From Calcarisporiella thermophila CBS 279.70 (lineage: Eukaryota > Fungi > Calcarisporiellomycota): a stretch of DNA of 64,000 nt. Shown piece after piece: positions 3,541 to 12,473 of this stretch. The DNA lies in contig NW_027192191.1 in NCBI RefSeq assembly GCF_041956535.1, positions 557,267 to 621,266 on the forward strand, written 5' to 3'. The position numbers and the translations under genes are program-made. The notes beneath the pieces were generated by a model. It was not told the DNA's origin. It searched no databases and saw nothing but the letters and a program-made list of their open reading frames with translations. Position 1 is the stretch's first letter, and every line of letters begins with the position of its first letter.

Positions 3541-5362
3541 CTATGGGTGTATACCGCCTGCCTCGATATCTCTCGACCTCATGGGCCGTATAAGGCCGGC
3601 TCTTGAGCTGGCTCGTGATATGCCGTCGCCACCGTATTCAAACGAGGATTTGTTCCTAATCTCCAACGGCCGCCCCTTCTCCTCCATCTCGTAGTACCCC
3701 CACGTGGCCTCGTCCAGTTCATTCTCCGGCTCCTCCATGACCAGCTGCTGCGAGACAAAGTTGGAGATCATCCGCGGCTTGTCACGATGGCCATTTCGGG
3801 GCGGGGGGCGAGGAAGGTTGTGCTGGCGGTAAAGCTCGTGCTCGTGCTCGAGGGGGTCCTCCGTAAAAGAGTTCATCGGGAGAGGATCCTGCGGCTGGAT
3901 CCGAGCACTATCGCGGAGGGAGGAGAGGTCGGGGCGGGTGGTTGGGAGGGATTGGCTGGTGGTGACGCGGGTGCTGTTGCTGCCATGCATGAAAGCGGCG
4001 TTCGGATAGAAAATGAAGAGGAGTAGGATCCAAACAAACATGGCCATGAAATTGAAGGTGGCTAGTGCAAGGCAAAGATAGAGAGAAGATGAGAAAAGAG
4101 GAAGCCCATCCGGGGGGACTCGAGCGCAACTCACCGATCAAAATGTCGGAAGCAAACTTGTTATGTGCGATCACCTGTTCTGAGGTCAGGCCGTCCACCG
4201 ACAAGATGAACATGGTGATACTTCCGATCATCGTGACGGCCGACAGAAGTCGGTTCATCGAGCAGAAATAGGCGAGCTTGGTCGCAATCTCCTTGGAGTT
4301 GGATTGGGTGTGGGTGATGCCAAGCAGATGGCGGAAGCGAATTTCCGAAACGATCCTGGAGAAGTGGGAGAGAGACGGAAAAAATGTACATATGAGATTC
4401 AAGCTCGATCCTCCCCCCACAGCAGCAACCAGCACGAGGATACATACCCCAAGAGTGATACGAGCAACAGCTCGAATGCGTAGAACAGCTGCGGGACGGC
4501 TTCGGCCTTGACGTGGTCGTTCTTGTAAAAGTATTCGAGAAGCGGAAAAGTGATGATACTCCCGGCACACCACACAAGATAGGCGCGGAATTCAAAGCTA
4601 GACTCATCAGGAGAGGAAAGAGAGAGGACAAAGGGATCAGCTTGGAGTGCCGAGGTTGCCACATCCAGTCACCGCAAAAGCCTACCTGCCGACAAAAGTC
4701 GTTTTGGTGAAGGTGCTGGCGAGGAAGTTCCAAAAGATCTGCAGCAGCGAGAGCATCCCCATCTGCATGGAGAAGCCGACCATCAGGGCAAATTCCGTGG
4801 AGAGGATCGCGTCGCGGTTGCCCGGGCTCCAGAGATTATCAGGCTTGGAGACGATGATGTCGGTTCTCGGGTCGTGCAGAAAGCCCTCCTGATACTTGAA
4901 GATCGAGGTGCGGACGTCATAGTACCTGCAAAAGGAGAGGCGAGGTTAGTAGGGCATCAGAGGGGCTCAAGCGGCGAGCACTACGTACAGCTGGAGCGGG
5001 AGGGCAATGAAGATAAATAAGGTCATGATAGTCTATCGGACAATGGTAAGACAAATTAGAACGGCCCATGTTTAGTAAGGTTTGCCTAGATCTATCTCGA
5101 AAGAAGCTATCGCACTCACCTTTATTTGGAAGTGTCTGATCTTGGACCACCGGAAGCAGGCAAATTTATCGGTTCGATAGATATGGATAATGATGTAGAC
5201 AAATAAGAAAGAGAACGAAACCGCTCTTTCTACACAGCAGAAGCGGGAACAGGGAGAAACCGGGGAAGAGGGGAGAGAGAGAGAGCGTTAGCCATTGGCA
5301 GGGGAACAGGAATGCCGATCAGAGGCGCACTCACCAAGGTATGAGTAATCCGAGAGATGCAT
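3541..5362 (-). CDS. Uncharacterised multi-pass (about 7 TM) membrane protein with cytoplasmic C-tail (multi-exon)
   Basis: Spliced exons MHLSDYSYL / ERAVSFSFLFVYIIIHIYRTDKF / YYDVRTSIFKYQEGF / SSFEFRAYLVWCAGS / MFILSVDGLT...HNKFASDILI / LATFNFMAMFVWILLLFIFYP show several hydrophobic helices and GT-AG boundaries. Confidence 0.7.
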
Positions 5363-8300: not shown

Positions 8301-8759
8301 TCTCCTGGAGATAAACAGTAGGTCTTTTGCTACGCGAACATGTTCGGAACTTACCGAGCTTTTATACGGTTGAGCCTCGTCTACTTGCTGAAGAATTAGA
8401 ATTGAAAGATGGAGTTGGTGTTCATTTTCTCACAGGAACTAAAAACATTGCGCGAGGGGGAGAGGGGGGGGGGGAACGCGATCAAAAACACCATGCATAG
8501 TGGGCACGGACGCTTTCATCACGCGCTTCTAGCAAACAAACGTCGTCAAGGTCACGCCAAATAACAGTCGTATAGGCTCGCCTCCATCTCCCCCCCTGTC
8601 AGAAATTCCCACGGGAATATCAACAAAACGAAGGCAAACTTTAATTCCTTATCGAACAGATCCCCCCCCGAATCTTCCTATAAAATCTCCCAACATTTTT
8701 TTTTTTCCTTCTCTTTATTGTTGAATATTAACCTACATTTCCTTTATACACCCTCCACT

Positions 8760-9757
8760 ATGAGCCTTGGAAAGCAAACGGATAAGATCACTTGCCTCTT
8801 GAACTGGCACGCCACCCCCTACCACGCCCCAGTCTATCTTGCGCAGAAGCTCGGCTACTTTGCCGAGGAGGGGATTAAGGTGGCTATCCTTGAGCCCAGT
8901 GACCCTTCCGACGTCACCGAGATTATCGGAAGTGGCAAGGTGGACCTGGGCCTCAAGGCAATGATCCACACGATTGCCGCCAAGGCCAGGGAATGGCCGG
9001 TCACGAGTATTGGCACGCTCCTTGACGAGCCTCTGACGGGAGTGGTGTATTTGAAGTCGAGCGGGATCACCGAGGATTTTCAAACCTTGCGAGGCAAGCG
9101 CATCGGTAACCATCACCTCCCACATCGTCTGGGCCTAACCCGCAGCTAACGTGCTTTTTGTTTTCTTTCTCAGGCTATGTTGGAGAGTTTGGCAAAATCA
9201 TCCTTGACGAGCTCACCCAGCACTATGGCATGAAGCCCGAGGAATACACCGCGATTCGCGTGGGCATGAACGTCACCGATGCCATCAAGCGCGGGGTCAT
9301 CGACGCAGGAGTGGGCCTTGAAAATGTGCAGCAGGTCGAGCTCGAGGCTTGGTGTGAGGAGCAGGGCAAGCCCAGGGACGAGGTGCGTATGCTCCGGATC
9401 GATGAGCTCGCCCACCTTGGCTGCTGCTGCTTCTGCTCCATCCTCTACATCGTCAACGAGAACTACCTGGCCCAGAACCGCGACAACGTCGCCAAGTTCG
9501 TCCGTGCCGTGGCCAAAGCAACGGAATACCTCCTCGCCCAACCGCAAAAGGCCTACAACCAATACTGCGAGGTGAAGCCGGATCTTGCCTCGCCCCTCAA
9601 CCGCAGAATCTTTGAGCGCTCCTTGCCCTACTTCTCCAAGAACCTGGAGAACGTCGAGCGTGATTGGAACAAGGTGACGAATTACTGCAAACGGCTTGGA
9701 CTGATTGACAACTCGTTCCAACAGAATTACACCAACGAGTTTGTCCTGAACAAGTAA
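8760..9757 (+). CDS. THI5: HMP-P synthase THI5/NMT1 (thiamine pyrimidine synthesis), one internal intron (about 9106-9173)
   Basis: [37 protein letters not shown] (PLP Lys and substrate His), GYVGEFGK and the diagnostic [11 protein letters not shown] motif. TATAAAA at about 8679. Confidence 0.97.
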
Positions 9758-9888
9758 GTAGGATGCCGACGCTTTTCGTGGTAGGTTTTAGTTTAGGCGA
9801 AGCCCCTCCTCCCATTTCACCACCATACCCCTCTCCGCTATGGGTAACTTTCTGTCGTATATAGTTCATTTTTATTCTTCTGTGTAGG

Positions 9889-9894
9889 AATAAA
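9889..9894 (+). terminator. Candidate polyadenylation signal AATAAA of THI5, about 25 nt upstream of the riboswitch P1
   Basis: AATAAA followed by a U-rich tract and a CA dinucleotide at 9919-9920. Confidence 0.5.
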
Positions 9895-9915
9895 AGCTTT
9901 TATATTTTTTTCTTT

Positions 9916-10021
9916 GTGCATGCGCTAGGGGTGTCAGAGCTTACTCTCTTACGAGAGATCTCTGTCTGAGAAATACCCTTTGAACCTGATCATTGTAATA
10001 GATGCGAAGGGAAGCGCGCAC
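9916..10021 (+). ncRNA. TPP (THI-box) riboswitch aptamer in the 3' region of THI5/NMT1
   Basis: All conserved elements occur in order: P1 TGCGCT(9921-26)/AGCGCG(10013-18); P2 AGGGG/CCCTT; P3 CAGAG...CTCTG with internal CTCTC-TTAC-GAGAG hairpin; CTGAGA-AATACCC; TGAACCTGATC; P5 loop TAAT; GCGAAGGGA. It lies next to a thiamine biosynthesis gene on the same strand. Confidence 0.95.
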
Positions 10022-11145
10022 ACCTTTTTCTTTTTTAATTACTTTTTCACCCCTTATCCTATCTACCTGCAACTCTACTCTTTATCTCCATTCCTCTCCC
10101 TCTCTCTTTCCCTCTTTCTCCTCCTTCCTCTCCCTGCCAGCCCTCTCATTTGTTTTGATTTCTCTACTCTTCTTCCCATACCTTGGTTACAGGTTAGAGT
10201 GTGTATGGGTCCAAGTATACCCGTACTCGATATCTCCTCCTGTGTTTCCGACTATTTTTTACCCACTCTCTTTTATCACCTTTCTCTGCTTTCCATATTT
10301 TACTTCCACTGCTCTATCCGATACCTCCCCCTCCCCCCCGGAGGCAAGATGGATCTTTGATCTCTCTTTCCTTTTCCACCTCGGTTATTTTCTCTCCCTA
10401 TTCCGAATCTCTTCCGTCCTTCCCCCCCTCCCCTTTGGTCCTCTCTCGGCTTCTTTTTCCTTCTTAGAAAAGGCGTGCGTGCTGGCCTCTTTCCCCAGCT
10501 TTAAATGAGGACAGATAAACACGGCCAGAAAGCGCCCGCAAAAAACCCGGCTCTTTCAAAGCAGCAATAGAAACCCCTCCATACAGATCCTACCCTCAAC
10601 TCCCAAGAGAAACATGGTTATGAAAATTCTAAAAAATGTAATCTTGTTCGTGTAAGGAATAGCTTTGTGTCATGGTGGCGAAGCACATATTGATTCCACC
10701 GTATTATCCAGTCTCAAATACACTGCCCCTCCCCTCCCATCATCTCAAAGAGTGTGCTAGTCGGCTGGTCGGTAGAGAGAATTCTCCACTCTCACCACTC
10801 TCTTTCATCTCTCATTTTGTATTTTTTTTTTGATCGTGGTGTGCTTCATCCTAAACAATTTAAGAAGTGTTAAGGCATTGGGTCATCCATCTCTGTCATC
10901 TATTTTTATCGGCGACAATAGAAATCTTTTGGCTGAGAGGCATTCCTTACCCTCCCCTCCCCCTTTTGATCTCTTCTCATCTGAGCTTCATCCTCGCCAT
11001 AATCACTTCATCTCCCAAATTCATCCCGCTCATTCCACTCTCTTGATCTGCCCTAAGCCGGTGATCGCCTTAAGATATCCCCTTAGTCATCCGCACTTCC
11101 AACCCTCTTTGATTTTTCCGAGCCTAAATTCTGGTGAGATCGTGA

Positions 11146-12473
11146 ATGAATAACTTCGATACACAGTCGGTCAAAAGCGGCACAGCCCCGGTCATGGGGG
11201 AGGCCATCTCTCGATCGCCAACCCCCTCGATGATCATGCCCTCTCCTGGGCAGCCGGGAGCTGGCAGCCAAAGCAATCTTTTCCAGCCGCTCTTGAGCCA
11301 TTCGCATCTGAAGCCGGGCCACAATGCCTCCCTCCTCTCCTACTCTCAGACCCTCGAACTCTATCGTCAGAATGCGCGCAAGACCAACGATCCCAATTTA
11401 CAATTTGATTTTTCGGTATTCCTCGTAGAGGCATCACGACAAACCGAAGATGACACACAACGACAAGAGCTCATGGACGAGGCCACCAAACTGCTACGAC
11501 AGCTCTCCGGAAAGGGGCATGCCGATGCACAATTTTATCTTGCCGAGTGCTACACGGCGGGGCTCTGCTCTCCCAAGGGCAAGAAGGAGTACGACAAAGC
11601 GTTTCCATTATATGTGCAGGCATCGAAGCATTCTCATCCGGATGCTGCGTTCGAGGCCGCAAAGTGCTACGAGGAAGGGCTGGGCACACGGCGCGAGCCG
11701 GCCAAGGCCCTACAGTTTTACCGGAAGGCTGCGACGGCCAATCATCCCGGCGCCATGTATAGACTTGCCATGGCCGAGTTGAATGGTGAGCTTGGCCTGA
11801 CAAAAAATCCGCGCGATGGGGTAAAATGGCTTAAACGGGCGGCCGAGGCAGCCACCCCAGAATATCCGCAGGCACCCCACGAGCTTGCCCTGCTGCATGA
11901 GAAGGGGATCGACAATGTTGTCTTCCCTGATGCAGAATATGCGGTCTCCCTATATGCTCAGGCTGCCGACCTTGGTCACGCGCCTGCCGCCTACCGCTTG
12001 GGCGAGTGCTACGAATACGGCCGCCTCGGCTGTCCGCAGGATGCGACGCTCTCCATCCACTACTACACGGTCGCTGCCCAGCAGGGGCACAAGGAGGCCT
12101 GTTTTGCCCTGACTGCATGGTATCTGGTGGGATGCCCGAACGTCCTCCCCCAATCCGATGCGGACGCATATGCGTGGGCATTGCGTGCGGCTGAAAAGGG
12201 GCTTCCCAAGGCCGAATATGCAATCGGCTATTTCACAGAAGGTAAGCCAATGGGATGGTTCGACTTCACTGGAATTCTTTTGGCTGACATCTCTTGAACG
12301 TTTATTTAGTGGGCATCGGGGTGGAGAAAAATCCAGAGGAGGCCATGGAATGGTATAAGAAGGCGGCTGAACATGGCGACAAGCGCGCTCTACATCGTTT
12401 AAATGGCACCATGCCGGTCGAAAAGAAAAAGACAGGAAAGCGAGGTTCATCGGAAGAGTGTGTGATATCTTAA
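11146..12473 (+). CDS. SKT5: Sel1-repeat chitin synthase activator (Chs4/Skt5-like), 2 exons, C-terminal CaaX
   Basis: Multiple SEL1 repeats (GHADAQFYLA, HPGAMYRLA, GHAPAAYRLGECYEYG, GLPKAEYAIGYFTE). Intron at 12242 joins to an exon ending EECVIS*. Confidence 0.88.

Follow-up and report, generated by a model that had tools for sequence, protein, structure and literature searches.

A TPP riboswitch aptamer 3′ of the THI5/NMT1 gene in Calcarisporiella thermophila and in other early-diverging fungi

The window analysed here, a 64 kb stretch of DNA, contains a THI5/NMT1 gene whose protein is identical to VTP21DRAFT_252 (309 aa) of Calcarisporiella thermophila, an early-branching fungus of the Mucoromycota. 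The gene consists of two coding exons, is preceded by a TATA box and is followed by a gene for a Sel1-repeat protein of the SKT5/CHS4 type (Table 1). Chytrid THI5 homologues of 304 and 309 aa terminate at the same place as the Calcarisporiella protein. Its short C-terminus is therefore natural, and a missing downstream coding exon was ruled out, the homologues stopping at the same residue.

Comparison of the whole window with Rfam by cmscan revealed a single match, to the TPP model RF00059, at 9917-10029 of the + strand. The match spanned the full model (positions 1-105) with a score of 62.2 bits, where the gathering threshold is 54.3, and an E value of 8.2e-10. An earlier note on this DNA had proposed such a search as a check on its claim that a complete TPP aptamer lies about 160 nt past the THI5 stop codon; the match exceeded the gathering score, and the spacing between stop codon and aptamer start is 160 nt. 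Stems P1 to P5 were all found, as were all the ligand-contact motifs, namely CUGAGA in J2/3, UUGAA in J2/4, J4/5, L5 and GCG in J5/4. The aptamer is tied to a thiamine-pathway gene, THI5/NMT1 (PF09084), and a chance match was rejected as its origin. From its sequence, we conclude that the element genuinely belongs to the TPP riboswitches, with TPP binding predicted.

Neither the Rfam scan nor a further search of the upstream region found an aptamer 5′ of THI5, in agreement with the earlier note, which had seen none between the TATA box and the ATG; nor does any other ATG occur between the TATA box and the start codon at 8760. The aptamer was assigned to the 3′ region of THI5, the placement which that note had likened to plant THIC. 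Features of fungal type I switches (an aptamer in a 5′-UTR intron together with a uORF) were not found at Calcarisporiella THI5, and nor were those of types II and III (an internal coding intron with a conserved downstream exon), the protein being complete at 309 aa.

Table 1. Features of the THI5 locus in the window and location of the second aptamer of the genome
Feature	Position	Strand	Basis or remark
TATA box (TATAAAA) of THI5	8679-8685	+	sequence
THI5/NMT1 coding exon 1	8760-9105	+	PF09084; identical protein
Ordinary coding intron of THI5, 68 nt	9106-9173	+	GTAACC, CTAAC branch point, CAG
THI5 coding exon 2	9174-9757	+	ends EFVLNK and TAA (9755-9757); 309 aa in all
Donor 1, GTAAGT, overlapping the stop codon	9754-9759	+	sequence
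Candidate anti-aptamer	9770-9780	+	9772-9780 pairs with 10003-10011; 9770-9774 with P1 3′ strand
Donor 2, GTAGGT, 24 nt past the stop codon	9781-9786	+	sequence, adjacent pairing, like spacing in DUR31-like gene
Two proximal acceptor candidates	9862-9887	+	AG ending 9864, AG ending 9887
AATAAA	9889-9894	+	only one from the stop codon to 11100
U-rich tract	9897-9919	+	poly(A) downstream element or polypyrimidine tract for AG 9928
TPP aptamer RF00059, stem P1	9922-9926/10013-10017	+	covariance model and folding
CTAG at P1/P2 junction	9925-9928	+	site of the plant and green-algal acceptor
TPP aptamer motifs	CUGAGA 9966, UUGAA 9979, P4 from 9985, L5 ~9995, GCG 10004	+	
Pyrimidine-rich tract, 77% C+T, without AATAAA	10018-10500	+	sequence
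Distal acceptor candidates	CAG 10138-10140, TACAG 10188-10192	+	CAG 10140 is the first AG past the aptamer
SKT5/CHS4-like gene, Sel1 repeats, C-terminal CVIS motif	11146-12473	+	PF08238
Second aptamer region, DUR31-like gene	L003:4565-5160 (G000:C1 ~1459560-1460160)		

The four motifs that the earlier note had listed around the aptamer (GTAAGT, GTAGGT, AATAAA and TACAG) were all located as in Table 1. Within the first 20 kb, the + strand has a single GTAAGT, the one at the THI5 stop codon. Donor 2 is likely to be the regulated 5′ splice site. Cleavage directed by the AATAAA is predicted just upstream of P1. The acceptor is less clear-cut than that note had it: its TACAG is present, as one of five candidate AGs (ending at 9864, 9887, 9928, 10140 and 10192), and is neither the first nor the only one. 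The AG ending at 9864 has GTAAC 18 nt upstream, and splicing to it or to 9887 would leave the AATAAA in the transcript. The AG at 9927-9928, inside P1/P2, has no branch point and its counterpart is missing from the second aptamer gene of the genome; the pyrimidine-rich tract is free of AG for 123 nt past P1. Ordinary introns of this genome, six of which were examined, have lengths of 60-89 nt, as against 148-412 nt for the prospective 3′-UTR intron, and a CTRAC-type branch point was found 14-25 nt from the AG in five of the six and at none of the five acceptor candidates.

Directly upstream of the donor at 9781, nucleotides 9772-9780 form nine contiguous pairs with 10003-10011, that is, J5/4 and the 3′ strand of P4. 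A 9-bp helix at this donor is equalled by 2.8% of background GT sites, in a comparison chosen post hoc; in an energy-based version with P1 included, the figure is 4.8%. Helices of eight pairs with the corresponding GCG(A/G)AGG strand were found at the second aptamer gene (4.4% of background GT sites) and in Mucor (4.1%); contiguous pairing at the donor failed in Rhizopus, Apophysomyces and Polychytrium, and donor masking measured by plain duplex energy against shuffles was not significant at any locus (17% at THI5). In the ligand-free fold, 9770-9774 pairs with the 3′ strand of P1, and this fold lies 4.5 kcal/mol below the aptamer-constrained one. No pairing was found adjacent to the donor at 9754, the use of which would add 18-105 residues to the protein, in tails that resemble low-complexity UTR sequence.

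A genome-wide RF00059 search found two TPP aptamers in all. The second (48.8 bits, E 1.7e-7) is located about 390 nt past the stop codon of a gene for an SSF-family DUR31-like transporter, which has a GTAAGT donor at +32 from the stop and an AATAAA at +251. The order donor, AATAAA, aptamer and pyrimidine tract is that of THI5, and the first AG follows 93 nt later. Both genes carry TTTTCG plus 2 nt immediately before the donor, and both have AATAAA before the aptamer and none after it within 300 nt. The gene downstream of the DUR31-like locus encodes a bZIP protein and is convergent; therefore, the second aptamer is not a leader. Like the type II switch of NCU01977/DUR31 (PMC3597705, PMC5997356), it belongs to an SSF-family transporter gene, but it is situated in the 3′ region and not in a coding intron. 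A long hairpin (4836-4930 of L003) was observed between its AATAAA and the aptamer, and its P2 shows a compensatory ACGG/CCGU pairing. No third aptamer was found in the genome with RF00059, with a custom model (third match E 0.15) or with a pattern search (control level). No aptamer was found up to about 1.4 kb to either side of THI4 (G000:C11:537056-540658), whereas THI4 aptamers are listed for many Mucorales. A weak second PF09084 match of 27 bits at G000:C8:172205-172501 is probably a distant substrate-binding-protein fold and not a THI5 paralogue.

In plant THIC, the aptamer masks a 3′-UTR donor at low TPP and the poly(A) site of the retained intron is used; TPP frees the donor, and splicing then removes the poly(A) site and gives long, unstable RNAs (Wachter 2007 and Bocobza 2007, as reviewed in PMC10226581). 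The acceptor of plants and green algae is an AG in P2 (bioRxiv 10.1101/2022.01.04.474978). Calcarisporiella THI5 shares with THIC an aptamer 3′ of the stop codon of a pyrimidine-synthesis gene in the same transcription unit, the succession of donor, poly(A) signal and aptamer (at both Calcarisporiella genes), candidate masking of the donor by the aptamer, and an AG at the P1/P2 junction. It differs in that the gene is THI5 and not THIC, the host is a fungus and a regulatory function is putative; splicing may use an acceptor past the aptamer, as no AG is present at P2 of the second gene, and relatives carry the poly(A) signal past the aptamer. With the ascomycete type I switches of NMT1 and THI4 in Neurospora and Aspergillus (PMC5882874) it shares the gene family, the aptamer class, two donors upstream of the aptamer and a P4-P5 strand that can pair beside the proximal donor; in fungal NMT1, P4-P5 nucleotides mask a donor (PMC3597705). 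Unlike them, the aptamer of the window lies past the stop codon, and there is no uORF, 5′-UTR intron or 5′ aptamer.

By analogy with plant THIC, we give about an even chance to the proposal that TPP feeds back on THI5, and so on pyrimidine (HMP-P) synthesis, through coupled 3′-UTR splicing and 3′-end formation. At low TPP, the J5/4-P4-P1 3′ strand would pair with 9770-9780 and hide the donor at 9781; the intron would be kept, the AATAAA at 9889 used and a short, stable mRNA formed with its end immediately ahead of the aptamer. At high TPP, folding of the aptamer would free this donor, and use of an acceptor inside or past the aptamer (9928, 10140 or 10192) would take out the AATAAA, leaving an unstable product with a long pyrimidine-rich 3′ UTR. 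The protein would be unchanged, because the donor at 9781 lies past the stop codon. The shared order of elements at both riboswitch genes of the genome supports this plant-like proposal.

The survey of related genomes that the earlier note had suggested was made at the THI5 loci of 11 further early-diverging genera, and the 3′ placement recurred in seven of them, belonging to three phyla (Chytridiomycota, Zoopagomycota and Mucoromycota). Past the stop codon, the RF00059 match scored 62.6 bits in Polychytrium, 59.6 in Basidiobolus, 59.1 in Apophysomyces, 54.5 in Podochytrium, 52.3 in Mucor hiemalis and 44.2 in Rhizopus. In Actinomortierella, a divergent aptamer with a P3 of about 260 nt lies about 420 nt past the THI5 stop; it was a partial match of the custom model, confirmed by reading and folding only. 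No aptamer was found at THI5 in Neoconidiobolus, Catenaria, Rhizophlyctis and Thoreauomyces, and no 5′ aptamer at THI5 in any of the 11 genera. P1, P2 and P5 are re-paired by different bases among the 3′ aptamers of the three phyla. A greedy P1 search took U-tract pairings instead of P1 at several loci, and is taken as a hint only. Six of the seven aptamer-positive genera have a convergent gene as the next one called.

In Rhizopus, Mucor and Apophysomyces, about 90-180 nt separate the THI5 stop from the aptamer, and a donor-like GT is found no more than 10 nt from the stop; in Mucor, GTAAGT comes right after it, and a polypyrimidine tract and CAG finish just before P1. Polychytrium has its AATAAA inside P3, and the six other genera (Mucor, Rhizopus, Apophysomyces, Actinomortierella, Basidiobolus and Podochytrium) have one 3-49 nt past P1. 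The succession of donor, AATAAA and aptamer was thus seen at both Calcarisporiella genes and in none of the seven other genera, and the window is a plant-like variant within a wider family of 3′ aptamers. Splicing out of the AATAAA, as the earlier note had envisaged, may apply at Calcarisporiella THI5, where the candidate 9-bp complement lies beside donor 9781; it is not a general mechanism, because AATAAA stands just past the aptamer in six of the seven other genera.

Several details of individual loci were also observed. In Actinomortierella wolfii (L015:4060-4470), the aptamer has a 12-bp P1, an extra hairpin between P4 and P5 and GGUGAGA with a compensatory swap, and was missed by RF00059, which suggests that Mortierellaceae aptamers are under-detected. 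In Polychytrium aggregatum, the AATAAA is in the P3 loop (L009:4670-4675), where cleavage would cut the aptamer, and the annotated C-terminus of the protein may read through an intron (GTTTGT 4418 to an AG near 4560). Mucor hiemalis has a perfect donor at the stop and a CAG directly before P1 (L013:3599-3772); the local Rfam match mis-set the 5′ end of its aptamer, which truly starts near 3773 and has a long P3. Fungal THI5/NMT1 proteins are often misnamed glycylpeptide N-tetradecanoyltransferase in databases, the symbol NMT1 being shared.

A Logan contig of Rhizopus delemar, 1,300 nt long, lacks the coding intron, on which ground it was taken as RNA-derived, and contains the whole aptamer 92 nt past the stop codon. 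The donor-like GT at +2 is unspliced, and the contig ends 6 nt past the aptamer, where the genome has AATAAA. This contig, from a relative and with an RNA origin deduced from the absent intron, is the only transcript evidence; a second search for Rhizopus contigs returned genomic contigs only. Its unspliced 3′ region, together with the AATAAA past P1 in six genera, counts against the plant-like model, and so do the length of the prospective intron and the lack of a canonical branch point at the candidate acceptors.

The same observations fit a reading, in our view rather doubtful, in which the riboswitch acts directly on 3′-end processing or mRNA stability and regulated splicing plays no part: the purine-rich 3′ strand of P4 and P1 would pair with or free U-rich elements near the poly(A) site, and any intron would be constitutive or incidental. 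The AATAAA just past P1 in six genera, that within P3 of Polychytrium and the end of the spliced Rhizopus contig, with its donor unused, would be explained, and the gap of 24 nt between stop codon and aptamer in Basidiobolus is too small for an intron. In the window, the U-rich tract can pair with 10003-10014, 9908-9919 forming 12 bp with it; however, these pairings are mostly G-U and such pairings are readily obtained by chance. Also against direct action, chance is an unlikely source of the GTAAGT-type donors that both Calcarisporiella genes and Mucor have no more than about 35 nt from the stop, and the characterised TPP switches of plants and fungi work via splicing.

Aptamers in 3′ UTRs have been described for thiamine genes and SSS transporters of diatoms and prasinophytes (PMC4260697; bioRxiv 10.1101/2022.01.04.474978), and those of diatoms gave no response to thiamine (bioRxiv 10.1101/2022.01.04.474978). 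The poly(A) signal at P1 is common to these and to the loci of Mucorales, Basidiobolus and Podochytrium; the diatom aptamers are without splice sites, whereas the Calcarisporiella and Mucoromycota loci have donors near the stop. With the diatom experiments as precedent, where the P1 stem overlaps the predicted poly(A) signal, the fungal aptamer could be conserved without thiamine-responsive control of THI5 in ordinary conditions, and its absence from four of the 11 genera and from THI4 of this genome would agree with that. We regard this as unlikely, since compensatory changes maintain the aptamer across three phyla and both aptamers of the genome lie beside thiamine-related genes.

A Neurospora-like choice between two donors, with 9754 deleting the stop codon and adding the tail described above and 9781 keeping it, would place the C-terminus of the protein under control, or give regulation of the opposite sign. 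The donor at 9754 is a perfect GTAAGT and the two donors flank the stop; moreover, in Mukherjee 2018 (PMC5882874) the NMT1 aptamer of Mucor circinelloides appears as ‘intron, type III’, with coordinates 47 nt from the 3′ end of the gene. Such a switch is quite unlikely, as the donor is past the stop in Mucor, Rhizopus, Apophysomyces and the DUR31-like gene, where the protein would stay the same, the tails look like UTR and nothing pairs beside 9754. That the aptamer forms part of the SKT5 5′ leader, or of an intron in that leader, is highly improbable, and this reading was rejected: SKT5 follows 1.1 kb downstream in the same orientation, but it has no thiamine role, a search from the THI5 promoter to SKT5 revealed no TATA-like motif, convergent genes lie downstream at the second locus and in six other genera, and the Rhizopus aptamer sits on a THI5 transcript contig.

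In a tree of 30 proteins, which has no outgroup and in which aptamer status was tested for a minority of rows, genes with a 3′ aptamer occur in each of the two groups divided by the best-supported deep split (99/96); the Dikarya genes, whose 5′ placement was taken from the literature, form a nested clade (99/97). The accepted root of the fungi does not lie on the Dikarya branch. Given this root and the tree topology, the 3′ placement is the simplest ancestral state, with several losses, and from the sequences it may be the original fungal layout. The earlier note had left open convergent or ancestral origin; the 3′ aptamers of seven genera make the arrangement look ancestral and not like a one-off. 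Calcarisporiella THI5 groups with those of Neoconidiobolus and chytrids (99/96), apart from Mucorales, which may reflect paralogy, transfer or a long-branch effect, and thus a complicated history. With a little less than even confidence, we propose an ancestral 3′ THI5 aptamer, its relocation to 5′ introns in Dikarya, and two modes of action at the 3′ end: a plant-like mode, in Calcarisporiella, and a mode in which the poly(A) signal directly follows P1. To our knowledge, control with the poly(A) signal directly after P1 has not yet been shown for any eukaryotic riboswitch.

Mukherjee 2018 (PMC5882874) distinguished four fungal types, all in 5′ UTRs or internal introns, and gave a sole 3′-UTR case, beside eIF5B in Postia. 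Vargas-Junior 2024 (PMC11683625) assigned the NMT1 aptamers of Mucorales to ‘5′ UTR type I’ or ‘intron type III’; the Rhizopus NMT1 aptamer published there is the sequence at L019 2684-2815, 92 nt past the stop. Mucorales aptamers are therefore already catalogued, with their 3′ position unrecognised in these two surveys, neither of which has a 3′-UTR class for thiamine genes; Moldovan 2018 is outside this comparison. A literature search found no papers on TPP riboswitches of chytrids or early-diverging fungi. Within the same comparison, what is new is the 3′ location and its likely mode, both undescribed for fungal thiamine genes. We regard the 3′ placement as well supported and offer the mechanism as a hypothesis.

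TPP riboswitches are the best-established riboswitch class of eukaryotes, and a split between kingdoms is taught for them, with 5′ introns and uORFs in fungi and 3′-UTR processing in plants; a 3′ layout in three fungal phyla breaks this split. It also corrects the location and mechanism that one survey, which puts these RNAs forward as antifungal targets, had given at least for the NMT1 switch of Rhizopus. The conserved 3′ layout of early fungi suggests that the aptamer shifted between the ends of the gene in Dikarya, and raises the question of riboswitch control over polyadenylation without splicing.
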